Below, piece after piece: positions 25,874 to 37,200 of a DNA stretch of 64,000 nucleotides. Source of the DNA: Takakia lepidozioides. Taxonomy: Eukaryota > Plantae > Bryophyta. Every line of letters begins with the position of its first letter. Positions within the stretch are counted from its first letter, which is position 1. The notes under the pieces were generated by a model, which saw nothing but the letters and a program-made list of their open reading frames with translations, made no database searches and was not told where the DNA came from. The position numbers and the translations under genes were made by a program. The stretch covers positions 21,142,001 through 21,206,000 of the forward strand of contig CM060731.1 in NCBI GenBank assembly GCA_030704615.1. Reading direction: 5' to 3'.

Positions 25874-28015
25874 CTAAACCTGTGCGTGAGTTGTGGGCTC
25901 GTACAACCAGTTTGCCAAAATTGTTTCTTTAGCAATGAAACCTGGATTCTTCTGAATCTGGTTCCATTTGTTGGTCTTCACATTGTAGGACGTAATCACA
26001 GTTGCCTTGTCACGATTTAGAAACGAAATGCAATCCATGGAAGAGACGCAATCGAACTCAGACTTCCTGAATCCGGGTATGAAGCATGAAGATAAGAGCT
26101 TTTGCGGCATTTTTGTTACTTGATGACAATCAGGCACCTCGTACAGATGCGGGATAAATCTCCAGATGTTTATTGTCGCTGGTTCTGATGCTCCTCTGGC
26201 AACTATGTACAGCTGATGGTTGCACTCTACAACTTGAGGAGATTCAACCGCAGAAGCTGGTGGCCAGTTATAAGCTTTCCAGGTTCGGGTAGCTAATCTG
26301 TACCCTAAGATTGCTGGAGCATATATACCAGCCTTCTGGGTCGCCAACTCTCCACCTAGAAATAGTGTGGGACCTTCAAAAAGTCTTGTTATGAGGGGAA
26401 GAGCCCGACCATAGGAGGTCTGGCCAGGCCGGAAGAGCTTGCCAGATGGCACAGAAAACATCCTCCATTTTTGCTTTAGAGAATTGTAAATGGCAACCCG
26501 CAGTCCTTCTGATTCTGGGCACTCTTTAAAAGGTCGATGGAGGCCTACGAGATAAATAATGTACGAGGTGGACATAGAACTGACGAGCATGTGAGCCACA
26601 GGGTTTTCCAGGTTACAGTGCGTAGGTGGCAGGATTCGAAATGTTTTAGCAATAGGATTACAGACAACAAGAAGGTGCTGCGGGGGGAATAGTGGTCCTG
26701 GAGGAGGCTGCTTCTTTTCAGCAGGCTTTACATCAGCTGGTTTTCCAGGTTTTTCATCAGCAGGTTTCTCTTCAACGGGTTTCTCTTCTTCAGCTTCCTC
26801 CTCATCAGGTTTCTTAATGGAAACCTTTTTCCCAGCTGGCTGTTTTATGGAAGTCTTTCTTTCAACAGGGGGTTTTATAGAAACTTCTTTACCAGCCGGT
26901 GTTTTGACAGAAGGTTTCTTCTCGACAGGTTTACCATCAGCAGGTTTCTCCTCTATTGGTTTTCCTTCAGGAGATTTCCCATCAGCATGTTCATCAATCG
27001 CAGGTTTTATTTCCTCGACTGGTTTTTCCTCAACAGGTTTGACTGCCAAGGGATCTACATAAGGTCGTATATCTCCACATAACAGTAAGAGTCCCCCTTC
27101 TCCTGCAAGGATCCTATTTACCTTTGGTGGGAGGAAGTTCAAAGAAGGCATTTTTACCCACTTTTTCTGGGCGCTGTGGTATGCTTGTACTTGGCGAAGT
27201 AGATCAGCTAAATTGATCACTCTTATTCCCAGTATTACTGTCGCAAACTTGATATCACCTGGGTTTGTTTGTAATTCAAGCTGTACGTATGGTTTAGGTT
27301 GAAGTTGCTGATACTTGTCATTCTCACCTCTTACTTTTAGTGAACCAATTTTTACATATGAATCACCTTCCAGCAGCTCGATTTGTACATACATATCTTG
27401 CAGGTCAATGCCTTCCAGAATAAAGTCAGTCTCGGGAAGTGTAATATACTCAAGCTCAACTGTTGCATCTAGGGACTCACCTTGTTGCTTTCCTGCCTCC
27501 TGTTTAACGTCTTTTTTTGGTTCTTGTTTTGTTTCTTGTTTTGCAGCATCACTTCCTTGTTTTACAGCCGGGTCAATTTTTACGTCACTTTCTTTTTTGA
27601 CCTTTGAAACAACTTCCTTTTGTTCTCGTTCTCTCGTGCAGAATGAACTGAGAAAGTACTCCTTTTTGTGGAAGAGGTGTCCTTGCAAGTAGGGGTTGAG
27701 ATGAGCATTAAACATGCGTTCCCTGTATGCAGGCACACATCCTACAGCAAAAAGCTTGGCAACAGGTAACTTGGACAATATAAGATCTCGCATATTATCC
27801 CTGTCTACCTGTTTTTTACTCAAATAGCTGAACCAGGCATGCCACCATGGTATGCACGTGGCTTTATTGGGTTCACGCATCAGTGCAGTCAAAGCAGCAC
27901 GAGCTTCCTGATTAGGTTCAGGACGAGGTCGTCTGCTCTCATCAGGGCCCACAAGAGTTACCTCAAACCTTTCCACAATTTTCAGCTTTACTCTCACATT
28001 CTTATCACTAGCCAT
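25874..28015 (-). CDS. Divergent F-box/kelch-like beta-propeller protein with large low-complexity insertions, single exon
   Basis: 728-codon ORF (ATG at 28015). Degenerate F-box LILSKLPVAKLFAVGCV; propeller motifs KKW.KMPSLNFLP, AGEGGLL, VVCNPIAKTFRILPP, IYNS....W, YNVKTNKW. K/E/P-rich repeat at 26700-27050. Confidence 0.75.
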   Translation of the reverse strand: MASDKNVRVKLKIVERFEVTLVGPDESRRPRPEPNQEARAALTALMREPNKATCIPWWHAWFSYLSKKQVDRDNMRDLILSKLPVAKLFAVGCVPAYRERMFNAHLNPYLQGHLFHKKEYFLSSFCTREREQKEVVSKVKKESDVKIDPAVKQGSDAAKQETKQEPKKDVKQEAGKQQGESLDATVELEYITLPETDFILEGIDLQDMYVQIELLEGDSYVKIGSLKVRGENDKYQQLQPKPYVQLELQTNPGDIKFATVILGIRVINLADLLRQVQAYHSAQKKWVKMPSLNFLPPKVNRILAGEGGLLLLCGDIRPYVDPLAVKPVEEKPVEEIKPAIDEHADGKSPEGKPIEEKPADGKPVEKKPSVKTPAGKEVSIKPPVERKTSIKQPAGKKVSIKKPDEEEAEEEKPVEEKPADEKPGKPADVKPAEKKQPPPGPLFPPQHLLVVCNPIAKTFRILPPTHCNLENPVAHMLVSSMSTSYIIYLVGLHRPFKECPESEGLRVAIYNSLKQKWRMFSVPSGKLFRPGQTSYGRALPLITRLFEGPTLFLGGELATQKAGIYAPAILGYRLATRTWKAYNWPPASAVESPQVVECNHQLYIVARGASEPATINIWRFIPHLYEVPDCHQVTKMPQKLLSSCFIPGFRKSEFDCVSSMDCISFLNRDKATVITSYNVKTNKWNQIQKNPGFIAKETILANWLYEPTTHAQV

Positions 28016-29439
28016 AGCTAGAGTCAGATCTGCAGAATCGGATGTCCACAATAAACGCAAACGGAGGTTATTGATCGCCGCACAGTGGTATGACTAGCAA
28101 TGGACCAGCAAGCAGGTGGATTATTGTGCAGTTCAAGGTGCCATACTTTATTTGGCATACCTGTAGGGCAATCAGAAGTTCAGTCTAATTTTTTTCCTCG
28201 AGGAAGAGGAGGGTAATTTGTCTCCTAAGGGTAAAGTGGGTGTGTTTCCATGTTGCCCAATCAAAAGGTTCTCAGAGATCTGCAAGAGATGCTTGACTTT
28301 CAATATGATCGGTCATCATATCCGTTTAGTCTATGGCGCATCTGAAGGAATGATCCAAAGTCAATTTGGTGGTGGACACTCCTGGAAGGAGACTATGTTC
28401 AGTGCACTAACCCTCTCTTGATTTGTGATTTGGTATTTTGCAAGTAATATGGTAGTGGATTGTCACGCCAATAAGCTATGACCAGTATGCACAATAGATC
28501 ACACGCAGAGATGCAAGATTTGAAGACATAATCGCAGTGCACGAAGAGGTGGGAGAGATGAAGAGGTAAGTAGCTTTGGTACACTCTGAATCTCAATTGT
28601 TCGCTTTGGAGGAGCGCCACATATCTGTGAAGAATCTCCACCATCTATTGTAGACAGAATGGACGAACCCTAATTAAGAAATCGTTGGTGCATACATTCC
28701 AATGGACACCACCAACGGTTTTGGTGGAAACCATAGGTTCATAACTGAAGGGTCTGGACAAAACAAGAGCTGCTGTGGACATGAGTATTTGTTTGCCCAG
28801 CATCGCCAGTACATTCAACCTCTTGAGCCAGCCTCAGATACTAGGGCCCAAACTAATACCCAGCTTAGCTCAACTTAAATGCGAAGCCCTGCAAAGAAAA
28901 GGTCCCAAATAGTAATCATCCCAAGGACCTAGCATATCTGGCCTTGGGAATTTGGTGGCATACATATCTCAGCATTTACACTTGTAATGCGGATGCGGGA
29001 TACATATATCAATCATCCAATGCTAAGCAATTTTGTGTGTAGCCACAATAGGTGGCCAAACCATGAAAGTTTTTACTAAATGCACATAAGGTCCATGACA
29101 TGCAATATAATAGAGAAGAGAATGACTGACATATTAGGACACCCCAAGGTACTAGGCGATAATTGCTTGCCTTCAGACCCCAGCAGGAAAGTGGAGATAG
29201 AAGGAATGACAAAGAAAGAAAAAAAAAAAAAAAAAACCCTGAGGCTCTACCCTCAAGGCACAATTAGAACCACATAACAAGTAAAACCAAACACGTCACT
29301 TAATTTAATAATCCTCTATTTTTAACACACACACAACCCAGTATATCTGGGAGAAAAACAACTGGCAGAGGTTCTCATTCAGCCTGATGCCCATCAATGA
29401 ACATGGACTGCGCGCTAAGAAAATGAAAGGATGAAGGAA

Positions 29440-31295: not shown

Positions 31296-34200
31296 CTACT
31301 CAACCATCACAGCTGGTGTAAGACGCCTCTTCTTTCTCACCCTCTTTTGGACCTCTCTCTCCTTCTCCCTTTTCAGGGCTTGCTTGTTGATCGACTTGCC
31401 AAACAGTGATGGTGCATCTCGTAAGCCAAAGCTCTTTGCCACATGCCCAAGATGCAGTTTCCGGACCTGGAAAATGGACTTTAAGTCTCCACGGTGAGCA
31501 GCATAGGCACGTACATAAGATCGAAATGCATCCACCGCTAGCTGTCTTGCATCTGTCTGGAAAATCAAACAATGCATAAAACCCAATCAATCAAAATAGA
31601 AGGAAATCCTATGTCCCAGACCTGAACCCTCGTGATGAACAAGATCATGTCCCAAGCACCGAAAACATAAAGCACGCTCTTGCCTCTAAGAATGACACAG
31701 AAAGAACCAGCCTAACCTTCAATTGCCTTTTTGAAGGCCACCGCAGTCCAACTGGGGAATTTTCCCTACCGAGCTACAAGTCCTCTCTGCAAATTAGCAA
31801 GGAAATCTGCTGCTTGCAGCAGAGTTGACAATGTAGCAAACCCTCTGAGAAAGGATTGAAGCAGAGGACCGATCATCAGGCCCTAACCACTGAACTATTG
31901 ATGTGTGCTCTCTCTGGAAACAATATGACAACAGCTTCCTTCTAAATTAAGTAGCAGAACTTTATTTTGCAACCTAAAAGCACAAATCCACCATCAACTG
32001 GTACACAGCTATACTTAGGAAGGCTCTGTCTCTCTCTCAAACACAACCCACACCCCCCCCATTAACATACACCAGACTGTAGCTGATGTATATGGAGAGA
32101 ACCTGTGGTAACAGCTTCTCACCATCTTCTAATCAGCAGAAAGCTTTGGTCTAGGCCCTTCGTGGCAGATAGTCTATCAAATGTAGACCACTACTAGACT
32201 CGTGAAGGGCACCTCCACTCTCTAACTAGCTATTCATATAGAAACAAGGTGCTATAACAGAATCTCAAGATCTTCCAACCAGCACAAAGCTCTGCTCTGG
32301 TGTCTTAGAAGGCAAACAGGCAACTCCACTCATTCAACCTCTGCTAAACTAACTCCACTCCCTGGGTCATCTTCTTCTTCTCCACTGTCTTTCACACATA
32401 AGGGGCACACAAGTACGTGTTGCTGAAATATATGGAGAGAATGTGTGATTACAGCTTCTCACCATCTTCTAAACAGCAGAAATTTGATCTGGGCCCTACG
32501 CGGCAGATAGTCCATCATCAGATAAAATGGCCACTGCTAGACTCATTAAGGGCCTTCTATTTGTCAAACAAATAGATAAACATGTGCACAAAGACTTGTA
32601 GCTGATTATAAGGAGAGAATGCGTGAATGTCCCTCAAAATCTTCTAACAAGCAAAAAGCTTGTGGATGCTTCTATGTACCAGAAAAGGCTAGCTGATGTC
32701 TATTGGCAAGATAACAGGCTCTCGCCATCCTCTCAGCAGTTCTACGTGGCAGATAGTATACCATCAACACGACTATGCTCACCAAGGTCATCTTCTCTCT
32801 CCCCTCTCTTGGGGCTTTTCTTATCGTTCCTTGTCCCATACGTCACAAAAGGAATCTTATCTAATCAAATGACTCACACGCATAGATTGGGACTGTCATC
32901 ACCATACCTTTCCAGCAACAAAGGCCTCTAGAGCATTCTGCATTAAGGAGGCTGCTGGATGCATCTCTACTGCCATCCAAGCATCGTCTCTCTTAACCCT
33001 CCTTGACTGAAGTCCGTCCAACAGCTGTCGTACAGGGAGCTCCTTGAGCGACACACCGTGCTTGAGCAAGTCCTGCAAATAGTCCTTCTCACTAGGTTGC
33101 AAGAAGAGCACCGCTTCTCCCTTTTGACCCAGCCGGGCCGTCCTCCCTACCCTGGAGAGAATTTGATCAGATTCAGGACTGTGTAGTTTTGTAAAATTAC
33201 TTTCCCTTTTGGTTGTGTTCGGAATTCCCATCATCTCTAACCAGCACAGCAAGACCGGTCCTCTTGGTTGTGACCTAACCAGAGAAGTCATTCCAAAAAC
33301 AGCGGCCTTTAATATACGCCATTCCAAGCAAGGAGACGAAAGATAGAAGATTGAATCCAAAAACTACCTGTGCACGTATTCTGCCGCATCGCCAGGGGGG
33401 TCATATTGAACAATGCCTGAAACGCCCTGAAAATCCAATCCTCTGGCTGCAACGTCTGTGCAAAGCAGAACTGCTGACTTGGCACTCCCAAATTGGTGGA
33501 AAGTTTCAGTCCGATCTGCTTGTGCCATCCTCCCATGAAGACGGAATGTTTCACATCCCAGAAGTCCACTCTCCTCCCTCTCAGCCTCTCCTTTCCAAGG
33601 GGTTGATGACCAATGAAACCCACTGACCACCAAGTAGAGGAAGTCCACAGCATCGCATGTTGAGAAAAACACCACTAGCTGTTTGGAAGAGACAGGGAAG
33701 AAAGGTGACCAATTTACACTTCAAGGCATTGCAAGCAAGGCCGAGAGAGACAAAGACAGTCTTGATTAAACAAACGAGGTCAAATTATCCAGCCTAGATG
33801 GAATGGACACACCTTGCATGAACCATGGCCTTGGGACTTTTGTTGCAGCAGCGCCAACAAGGCAACAAGTCGCAACTTGCAAGGCACTGCAAACAGACGA
33901 CCAGGTCCCAAAATTTTAGCAGGTTGTTCAGGCCCTAAGTGATTGAGTGCATGGTCACAACAGGGTTCTCTGAACTAATGTCTTGCCAGCTGGGGAGGAA
34001 AGATTTGATCATTATTCAGCCTTGCCGTACTGCCATAGACCAATGCCACTGAGGACAGAGCAGAAGGGAACCCTGGATGGGTGGAAGGAAAGAGAGAAAG
34101 AAAGAGAGGACTTAATAATGTCCAGAGGGAGAGAGAAAATTAAACCATGTACATGCAATACAATACCCTATGCAACACAGCAGATCTCACCTAACAAACC

Positions 34201-37200
34201 AGACCCCAAGACCTCCTTTCTAACAATCATGCCCCTGTGCAAACACTATCTCAATGCACTGGAAAGAGTACCCTTAAAAAAACTTTGAACGAGCTGGGCT
34301 GGAATCTTGTACTCTGTGTATCCATCAGCAGGCTGGGGTTGCCCTGTTCCTGTTTCCAGCTTCTGGCTTATGTCCTTGGCTGGAATCGTACTGTCCAGGC
34401 CTACAGTTGCGGGTTCACTTAGACTTAGACTTGCAAGTTTTTCCACACGCTCATTCAATGTCGCCGAAAGAAGCACATGCTGCCTTTCCTCTCCCCCATG
34501 TCTAGATTGGTCTTGTTGGGGGGCTGCCGCTGAATTTCTTGAGCCTAGCAAGCTCAAAATGCTTTCAATATCCTTCTCAAACCCAAGGTCAAGCAATCTG
34601 TTTGACCCCAGTTCCAATCCAATCCCACCACCCAAAAGAAATCAATATGTGGACACCAATATTATTGAGGCATGGGGCAGCGTACAATGGTGCCAAGATA
34701 GAGTTCACCCAAATTCCAAAGCTCTTTTACACAATCCATGGACGCCTGCAGTCTAACACATAATTGCATTAGTGCATTGGCAAGCCTGGATTTCATTCTA
34801 GTTATGAGCACAGGTGGACAGGCCTGGAGGGGAATAATCTCTAGGTGATAACTCAAAACCAAGCAAACAGGTCCTCAATATTCCAATCAAAAGCTTGAGA
34901 AGAAAAAATCTGCAGGGATGATACTCCTGAGTATATGTTATCACTTGATTGTTAGTGGGTGTTTCACCTAACATTCAACATGTGAGATACTACACGAGGC
35001 TTGTTGCTTACAGTTGGAGCAACAAAGGCCCACAGGCATGACCCTACACTAGGTGTCAGACTAAGAGATGGGAGAAGACCTGTCAGCTTCATCGAAGACC
35101 AGCCACCGCAGACACTCACGCCGAAATGATGATGTGTTGCTGAGGTGGTCTAACAAACGGCCCGGGGTAGCCACCAGAATGTTGATACCTAGAGATATCA
35201 CCACCACATAAGATGAGTTGTTGTATTTAGGAAACACAGAAGTCTAACTTACACGTCATGCCACAGAGAAGGATGAAGAGAAGGGCAGAGATGGCCACTG
35301 GCATAGGTTGATGAATTCAGAAGCTGGGACCAGATCATCTATAGTAATTTTCACTTCAAAAAACAAAAGCAGAACTCTGAGAGAACCATTGCCATCTCAG
35401 TGCATAAAGACAGACCAGTACATTTACAGACCTTTGCGAAGGCGGGCTTTCTCCTTTGAGCGCTTTTCACCCCCCATGACACAGCCAGGCACCAGCCAAT
35501 GAAAGCGATGCAGCAGCTGCTCTGCTACTCCACAGACCTGCACACAAAGCTCCCGTGTTGGCACCAGCACCAGCGCTGTGCTCCCTTCTGTCAGACTCTT
35601 CCTCTGGATCTTTATTCAAACAACACTACCATTGATACAGAAGCACGGAATGCTATGCCATACTTACATGGCTTTTCTCAAAGACATTCAAAGGGCATTC
35701 TAAGGCAGAGCTGGAGATTATATGGGTCCACATTAGGGTAGACTGACACATTTAGATGTCTAATCATCATGCCCTGTGCATGATAAGAGTCAGGAAGTGA
35801 CTAATTACGTGAATTCTGGCCATATTGCCTAGTCCAGGAAGGATTGGGCTGGGCCAACAGGTCTGCAGTGAAGACCAGGTTTGTGGGTCTAATTCTCACA
35901 TGTCACAAGACTTGGTGTGTATCAGCTATCCTCCACTGGGTATGTTCAAAGAAAACTTCGATTAGTTGTACCTTACAAACTCCACAAAGTTCTGAAGTTC
36001 TCAAAGAAGGTAGTAACATACATGCAAGGAATGTCACCCCTGCTCATGGCCAAGCCGGCAATAGTACAGAGTGAAAGAAATAAACATTACAATGTCCAAG
36101 GTAGGACCTGAGAAGCCATGCTAAAAGCGAGGAAGTACTTACCCCCAAGAGGGTGAACAACTGGCAGAGACAGAGAATCAATTATCAGGAAACACAACAA
36201 AAGAGCAGAGCATTAACATACCAAAAGTGCCATCATTTCGGGAAACGCGAGGTGTGGATGCTTGCAGGGCATGGATGATGGGAGCCAGGTATACAATGGT
36301 CTTACCCGTTCCAGTTCCGGCATTCACGAGCCTGTCTTACCTCTTGTCAGGGGGAAACAATGCGAAAAAAAATGCAGGAGCACAACACAAACAGTTCCTT
36401 TGAAGTATAGTGCCTCTCTGTGTGAACCCTCTCTCCTATACCAAATAATTCAACATACTGTTAGCAAAAGGAGAAGAGAAACCTATGTCTGCATGGTTAC
36501 ACGGAAGACAAAGAGTTTTGTATCCATAGCTACACCATTCAAACTTCTCAACCGGAAGACAGCCCGTCACTGCTCCATGGTATCTTTCCTTACTCCCACT
36601 CTTTGAACTTTCCATTCCTTCATCCATAAGCTGTGAAACTCAGCAATACAGCAGCATCCATGGCCAAGTGGCCATATGCAAGCTAGATATTACAATAATA
36701 AAGTAAGGCATGATTCCCACCACTCAATATCTGATATCAGTCATGAGCTATTAAACCATTGGCCACCAAGCTTTTCATTGTATCATCATGGTTTTCCAAA
36801 AATATGTTGATCAGGCCTACTACATCACTGTCGGGAGATACCAGTATATTAAGCTCATCTCATAACTCATGGAGATCCCACAGCACAGGAGTACAAAATT
36901 AACCAACACAAGATAGTTGTATACCATGTGACTGAAAGCATCAGCACATTCAAAAAAACAAGGATACACATCACGCCCTGAAAGGACAAGAGGGATGGCG
37001 GTTTGTTGAATGTAAGTAGGTGCAGTGAAACCCATTTTGTCTGCGGTGCCCACCCACAGAAATCATCAGGTTTAGGAAAATATAGCACATCTGTCAAATC
37101 ATGGCTGCAAAAATTCAAACAAAAAAAATTAGTGGATGTGTTACCACACTTTGCCGGGGTTGACATGATTGTTACATTCTGTCCGAAATGCATGCTGGAA

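Follow-up and report, generated by a model that had tools for sequence, protein, structure and literature searches.

A tandem family of putative H/ACA snoRNA genes in the last intron of a moss DEAD-box helicase gene, with a probable target in helix 42 of 18S rRNA

Clusters of small nucleolar RNAs (snoRNAs) are well known from introns of ribosome-biogenesis genes, and the closest described systems are the intronic or clustered H/ACA snoRNAs of plants, such as the snoR families of Arabidopsis and rice: RNAs of ~140 nt with the order hairpin-ANANNA-hairpin-ACA, pockets 14–15 nt from the box, a ribosome-biogenesis gene as host of the intron, and tandem copies. In mammals, two intact snoRNAs in one intron are also the layout that yields snoRNA-bearing long non-coding RNAs (sno-lncRNAs). 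The locus considered here is like the plant families in all the respects just listed. It occupies the last intron of a DEAD-box helicase gene in a stretch of the moss Takakia lepidozioides (assembly GCA_030704615.1, contig CM060731.1, positions 21,142,001 to 21,206,000; 'the window' means the whole of these 64,000 nucleotides). We think it quite probable that this intron carries the genes of a tandem H/ACA snoRNA family whose 3' hairpin most likely guides a modification in helix 42 of 18S ribosomal RNA (rRNA); the family appears real, is conserved in another moss, and is probably an ordinary rRNA guide rather than an orphan.

The intron contains, on its sense strand, two full units (A and B) along with two or three decayed copies (Table 1), in agreement with a first-pass annotation of the window that had counted about five related sense-strand units. 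A direct-repeat search gave families common to up to four places in the intron, and R1, a covariance model made from A and B as the best pair of units with a hand-checked structure, gave four matches on the sense strand. Units A and B share with the best unit of a second moss (L6_2, considered below) a common hairpin-hinge-hairpin fold predicted by RNAfold, and ACA stands 3 nt before the predicted 3' ends of A and B. The hairpin-ANANNA-hairpin-ACA order that had been read in these two units is thus confirmed by boxes and folds together, each of them giving two hairpins (z-scores in Table 1). The differences between them preserve pairing, as where U.G is replaced by C-G in hairpin 1, or fall on an N position of the H box (AGAUCA vs AGACCA), and the pocket-side strands GAGUCUA and UUAGAAGAUGG are the same in both, all as the earlier annotation had it; GAGUCUA is invariant in the best unit of the second moss as well. 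In the 3' hairpin the pocket measures 13 nt from the closing G-C pair to ACA, placing the target U at 14, and in the 5' hairpin it measures 12 nt with all pairs closed or 13–14 nt with one or two top pairs open. The Cajal-body (CAB) box UGAG is absent from the apical loops CAUUUGA and UUUUAUCUGAUGA of hairpin 1 and UACC and AAUC of hairpin 2, the sole UGAG being base-paired, on the 5' side of the hairpin 2 stem.

The other copies had been described as lacking a hairpin or a box, and this holds for the decayed copies found here. The two partial units upstream of A fold no better than shuffles (z -0.9 and -1.0), and the decayed unit between A and B lacks ACA (AGCUAGUU stands there), a slightly wider stretch around it, 32228-32375, folding worse than shuffles (z +2.0). 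Intact and decayed copies side by side agree with the birth-and-death family that had been suggested. Tandem Repeats Finder reported no array because the spacing is irregular (146–340 nt) and the copies have diverged; the arrangement is a cluster and not a regular satellite. Rfam at gathering score gave 0 matches in the whole window, so that no Rfam family matches the units.

The units are conserved in a second moss. Loci of other mosses were collected as exon-sized open reading frames (ORFs) found with the last exon of the helicase gene as protein query, and the contigs were then compared. Two of these loci, L006 and L007, derive from two Logan runs of one moss species and carry a homologous array in the same (last) intron, ~1870 nt long, with four R1 matches (Table 1). 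When the two orthologous introns are compared by blastn, only the units align (79–80% identity over 128–144 nt) and the remaining intron sequence has no similarity, while the flanking coding exons are 70–78% identical; the units are therefore at least as constrained as the protein. Among the five best copies, 93.8% of pair cells hold standard pairs vs 39–52% with the partners slid, and five pairs are changed on both sides, all of them in the two lower stems. None of 500 shuffles attains the observed values for percentage paired, both-sides counts or covariation score, in an alignment that was fitted to the model and hence favours the structure somewhat. On this comparative evidence we regard the units as being under selection, more than chance would give. 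The other sampled mosses, at a distance from the window similar to that of L006, have short last introns with no R1 match, and the array is therefore old, yet not fixed in the intron.

The rRNA used in the search for targets came from plant ribosomal DNA (rDNA) contigs that contaminate bacterial genome assemblies; all plant-like loci among them are of seed-plant origin, and all such contigs carry the seed-plant 5.8S signature. The reference, L049, is a leaf-nodule Burkholderia assembly with the rDNA of its Rubiaceae host, on which Rfam places 18S, 5.8S and 25S. Eukaryotic rRNA was found neither in the window nor in viral-contig scans, and a search for moss rDNA by way of a spurious 25S ORF returned seed-plant rDNA only. 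As a separate observation, more than 100 contigs filed as bacterial or archaeal carry eukaryotic rDNA through assembly contamination (L017, L049 and ~20 other loci), with complete seed-plant rDNA units in assemblies of leaf-nodule Candidatus Burkholderia and several cultured actinomycetes.

Loose pairing rules gave many weak matches. Under canonical rules (pocket strands only, an unpaired U-N, arms of at least 3 bp each, and a register fixed by how far the pocket lies from the box), A, B and L6_2, with the pocket 14 nt from ACA, have one match each among the 1178 uridines of 18S, 5.8S and 25S, and this single match is U1569 of the L049 18S, in UUGCAAUUGU[UG]GUCUUCAACGA. The pairing there is 3+6 bp for A and B and 3+8 bp for L6_2, where an A-to-U change lengthens it; in the predicted duplex UAGAAGAU pairs with 18S GUCUUC immediately 3' of the target U-G, and the first three bases of AUAUA pair with 18S U-G-U immediately 5' of the target U. 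The L049 numbering runs 2 nt ahead of tomato in this 18S region, and U1569 is therefore tomato U1567. Tomato 18S Psi1567 has been mapped in the RNase T1 fragment U-Psi-G, 1566–1568, as 85–92% modified (PMC9483110, supplementary tables S7 and S8), lies in helix 42, and is listed as conserved and flagged as found in human (PMC9483110); human Psi1625 is also in helix 42 (PMC10227372). The 3' hairpin thus has a single match of canonical geometry, at a mapped pseudouridine, where the first-pass annotation had recognised no target; the orphan or non-rRNA family that it had proposed is to that extent unsupported for this hairpin. We take tomato Psi1567 and human Psi1625 to be equivalent on the basis of the tomato flag, the common helix 42, and a count from a conserved 2'-O-methylcytidine (Cm) along the human sequence, which agrees. 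Across 25 seed-plant rDNA loci the target segment does not vary, and an algal-type variant, UUGAUCUUC, can pair as well; the pairing is therefore expected to hold for moss. As to the shortness of the duplex, 8 bp split 3+5 suffices for guided pseudouridylation in yeast (PMC6049503). Shuffled pockets give 0.19–0.8 matches, with some uridine matched in 17–47% of trials; a random pocket would fall on a mapped site with an estimated p of about 0.02–0.07, ~9% of uridines being modified. The support for the target comes from its coincidence with a mapped pseudouridine, and in light of it the 3' hairpin probably guides the conserved helix-42 pseudouridine of 18S rRNA.

Several other candidate sites were rejected. 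U19 of the L049 5.8S (6+7 bp) would need a pocket ~20 nt from the H box, rests on a lineage-specific base in the rDNA of the Rubiaceae host, and is not the mapped site, since Arabidopsis Psi22 and tomato Psi23 correspond by count to U17. The match at 25S U767 has a 10-bp left arm and no right arm, and 18S U751 and U1060 put the pocket too near ACA.

The 5' hairpin has no convincing target on seed-plant rRNA. A weak lead is the second U of the ES12 UUCG loop, which A and L6_2 alone among the three copies match, with 5+4 bp; Arabidopsis Psi1702, a mapped site, is the first U of that loop (PMC8351944). The left strand of this hairpin also has a one-sided, G.U-rich match of 8–12 bp right after tomato Psi912, with no right arm. 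The left strand, which reads UCAUGAGUCUAG in L006, is complementary to 12 consecutive 18S bases, UUGGAUUUAUGA, with four G.U pairs, and the 12-base stretch starts exactly two bases after the uridine that is tomato Psi912 (strands in Table 1). The yeast helicase of the DBP7 type helps release snoRNAs from pre-ribosomes. One might imagine, and we hold this as a doubtful speculation, that the 5' hairpin is not a guide at all, that GAGUCUAG and its flanks serve as an anchor or chaperone on pre-18S rRNA, and that the two units stabilise an intron RNA that feeds back on the helicase.

The host gene and the limits of the intron were established from RNA contigs. Four runs were used, as assembled contigs only; they were labelled RNA by guess, but contain spliced contigs, and those of X1 and X4, two runs of the same species, are 100% identical to the window. 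The splice 31556->32908 (CT..AC on the plus strand, GT..AG on the minus strand) is defined by spliced contigs of X1 and X4, as are seven further introns upstream in the helicase gene, and the intron is the last one because the exon downstream of it ends in a stop codon. The flanking ORFs encode the end of Helicase_C and a CTE_SPB4 tail (PF13959), the latter in the last exon; PF13959 proteins found with the last exon as query are named DDX31/DBP7 (JGI) or DDX31 (NCBI), and the orthologous loci have DEAD and Helicase_C on neighbouring exons. By these domains and relatives the host is a DEAD-box helicase of the DDX31/DBP7 type, presumably RH17-like in Arabidopsis terms; single exons served as queries. 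The earlier placement of the array on the sense strand of the last RH17 intron was right in substance, as the spliced contigs and the PF13959 tail bear out. Another intron of the same helicase gene, 35576-36221, contains a box C/D-like element in which UGAUGA directly follows a 6-bp terminal stem, GGGCAU/AUGCCC, without a clean D box, and which matches snoZ266 weakly (17 bits, E=5). The stretch 35617-35933 around it is ~90% identical to RNA contigs with a depth of 106 (X1) and 79.5 (X4); a highly expressed paralogue of this stretch elsewhere therefore seems likely, and the window copy of the element may be decayed. Downstream of the helicase gene lies an uninterrupted ORF of 728 aa with a long lysine/glutamate/proline-rich repeat region.

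In X1, three unspliced contigs tile 31573-32859 of the last intron at a depth of 4.8–8.2 vs 6.5–10.6 for the spliced exons; among the remaining seven introns, cover is nil in six and about 1.2 in one. The intron contigs leave 16 nt and 48 nt uncovered next to the splice sites, and no contig crosses an exon-intron junction; such ends would be more in keeping with an excised intron or lariat than with unspliced pre-mRNA, while contigs are no proof of it, and the cover as a whole fits a long-lived excised or retained snoRNA-host intron. X4, from the same species, has no intron cover.

Taking these observations together, we consider a conventional pathway. The intron would be spliced out of the helicase transcript and trimmed by exonucleases to RNAs of ~140 nt, protected by the H/ACA proteins (Cbf5/dyskerin, Nop10, Nhp2, Gar1), and the RNA would guide pseudouridine formation. 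In the 3' hairpin the unpaired U-G would be flanked by two helices, AUA with U-G/A-U 5' of it and GAAGAU with G/A-UCUUC 3' of it, and the helix-42 target (tomato Psi1567, human Psi1625) would be placed 14 nt from the ACA box. We infer the processing to a discrete RNA, the protein binding and the modification in moss; the discrete ~140-nt RNA in particular is a prediction, as contigs show no RNA ends.

A number of observations weigh against this reading of the array. The best L006 copy deviates in both boxes (AGACUG and AUA), and the L006 copy at 2830-2971 has consensus boxes (AGAAAA and ACA), yet both of its pockets have diverged. The intron RNA comes from contigs of one run that cover the whole intron and give no RNA ends, and Rfam at E up to 10 over 31500-33300 returns no H/ACA family. 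With respect to the target, the 9-bp match taken alone is near chance, with a right arm of only 3 bp; the duplex was computed on seed-plant 18S and not on this moss's own; and at 18S U1563, the corresponding position in Arabidopsis, the compendium for that plant has no entry for a pseudouridine or a guide (PMC8351944, supplementary table 3). For the 5' hairpin, no canonical rRNA site is common to A, B and L6_2 on seed-plant rRNA. As for the diverged L006 copy, its pockets read ACAAAUCCAUC for the family's AUGAGUCUAGC and GAAGUU..UUAUG for GAAGAU..AUAUA, and it may be either drifting away or adapted to a new target. Another reading is that the family is genuine H/ACA RNA acting as an orphan or on a non-rRNA substrate (small nuclear RNA (snRNA), mRNA or other), the helix-42 match being a coincidence: no Rfam family matches, the 5' pockets are as conserved as the 3' ones without a common canonical rRNA target, the 3' duplex of 3+6 bp is short, shuffled pockets often find some uridine, and the site is missing from the Arabidopsis list. 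We nevertheless consider such a coincidence rather unlikely, because the sole site common to the three good copies is a mapped, conserved pseudouridine, for which the joint chance is ~0.02–0.07, and because the geometry, 14 nt from ACA, is canonical; the apical loops without a CAB box argue in addition against a Cajal-body snRNA guide.

Two further explanations dispense with guiding to a greater degree. That the array is a decaying repeat or a transposon-derived hairpin, such as a miniature inverted-repeat transposable element (MITE), which mimics H/ACA architecture and gives no functional RNA, might be suggested by the degeneracy of the majority of copies in both species. We find this hardly credible. 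The searches for dispersed copies covered a limited amount of DNA, namely the window, 14 moss loci and metagenome contigs, which hold moss host DNA; there was no further R1 copy on either strand of the 64-kb window, where the sole other match has E about 1, none in the 14 moss loci outside the orthologous intron, and the 5'-hairpin pattern run over the metagenome contigs gave one chance match only, in L118, a bacterial ABC-transporter contig. Every copy is moreover in the sense orientation, the units surpass the adjoining coding exons in conservation, and their stems show covariation. Alternatively, the units might act mainly in cis, as a structured or stable intron or a sno-lncRNA that regulates splicing or expression of the host helicase, with guiding secondary or lost. 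The X1 data lend themselves to this, the last intron standing at about half the exon depth among introns with almost no cover and no contig bridging an exon-intron junction, as does the sno-lncRNA-type layout of two intact units per intron; stable lariats that bear a snoRNA have been described (PMC8609340). On the other side, the contigs reveal neither ends nor levels and X4 has no intron cover; the units are missing from the short last introns of other mosses, so that the host gene does not need them; and conservation is centred on the boxes, the pockets and the stems, which is the pattern that a guide acting in trans should show. A role mainly in cis thus appears improbable to us, and we favour tandem H/ACA snoRNA genes with a 3' hairpin directed at helix 42.

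Table 1. Positions of the putative H/ACA units, their boxes and pocket strands, and neighbouring features (window coordinates unless L006 is named)
Feature	Position	Strand	Evidence or remark
Last intron of helicase gene	31557-32907	minus	1351 nt, phase 0; contains the array
Unit A, putative intact H/ACA	32412-32557	minus	R1 176 bits; two-hairpin fold -41.4 kcal/mol, z -1.8
Unit A boxes	H AGAUCA 32490-32485; ACA 32420-32418; predicted 3' end 32415	minus	sequence
Unit A 5' hairpin, left pocket strand GAGUCUA	32538-32544	minus	
Unit A 3' hairpin, left (5') pocket strand UAGAAGAU	32464-32471	minus	
Unit A 3' hairpin, right (3') pocket strand AUAUA	32429-32433	minus	
Unit B, putative intact H/ACA	32072-32215	minus	R1 173 bits; fold -48.8 kcal/mol, z -3.2
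Unit B boxes	H AGACCA 32152-32147; ACA 32080-32078; predicted 3' end 32075	minus	sequence
Unit B 5' hairpin, left pocket strand GAGUCUA	32195-32201	minus	
Unit B 3' hairpin, left pocket strand UAGAAGAU	32124-32131	minus	
Unit B 3' hairpin, right pocket strand AUAUA	32089-32093	minus	
Two decayed partial units	32591-32794	minus	R1 29 bits across both; repeat families D2-D5
Upstream partial unit	~32794-32690	minus	3' half of hairpin 1 and hairpin-2-like stem; without H box and ACA
Downstream partial unit	~32690-32591	minus	hairpin 2 and ACA kept; without hairpin 1
Decayed unit between A and B	32219-32341	minus	R1 28 bits; 62% identity to unit B
L006 R1 match, best (L6_2)	L006 3048-3193		103 bits; fold z -3.7
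L006 R1 match (L6_1)	L006 2830-2971		53 bits
L006 R1 match	L006 3563-3699		48 bits
L006 R1 match	L006 3379-3520		12 bits
Strands matched near Psi912	32195-32206; 32538-32549	minus	one-sided match
Strand matched near Psi912, L006	L006 3057-3068		one-sided match
Box C/D-like element	35689-35778	minus	intron of same helicase gene
728-aa ORF	25874-28060	minus	downstream of helicase gene

Returning to the known systems, the moss units differ from the plant snoR families in matching no Rfam family and in a predicted site, Arabidopsis U1563, that has no entry in the compendium (PMC8351944). With the guide for human Psi1625/tomato Psi1567 the likeness considered is one of site, the moss 3' hairpin being predicted to pocket the same uridine. 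Sno-lncRNAs and snoRNA lariats are alike in having two intact snoRNAs per intron and, in one run, RNA of the intron; unlike them, the moss intron contigs extend past both units. No new kind of RNA or mechanism is indicated by these comparisons. If our assignment is right, the family would provide a candidate plant guide for a conserved helix-42 pseudouridine of 18S rRNA that has been mapped by mass spectrometry in tomato. The locus also extends the set of snoRNAs described from mosses, which is still thin, and is a clean case of the familiar intronic cluster, retained in one and the same intron of deeply diverged mosses while neighbouring copies decay.

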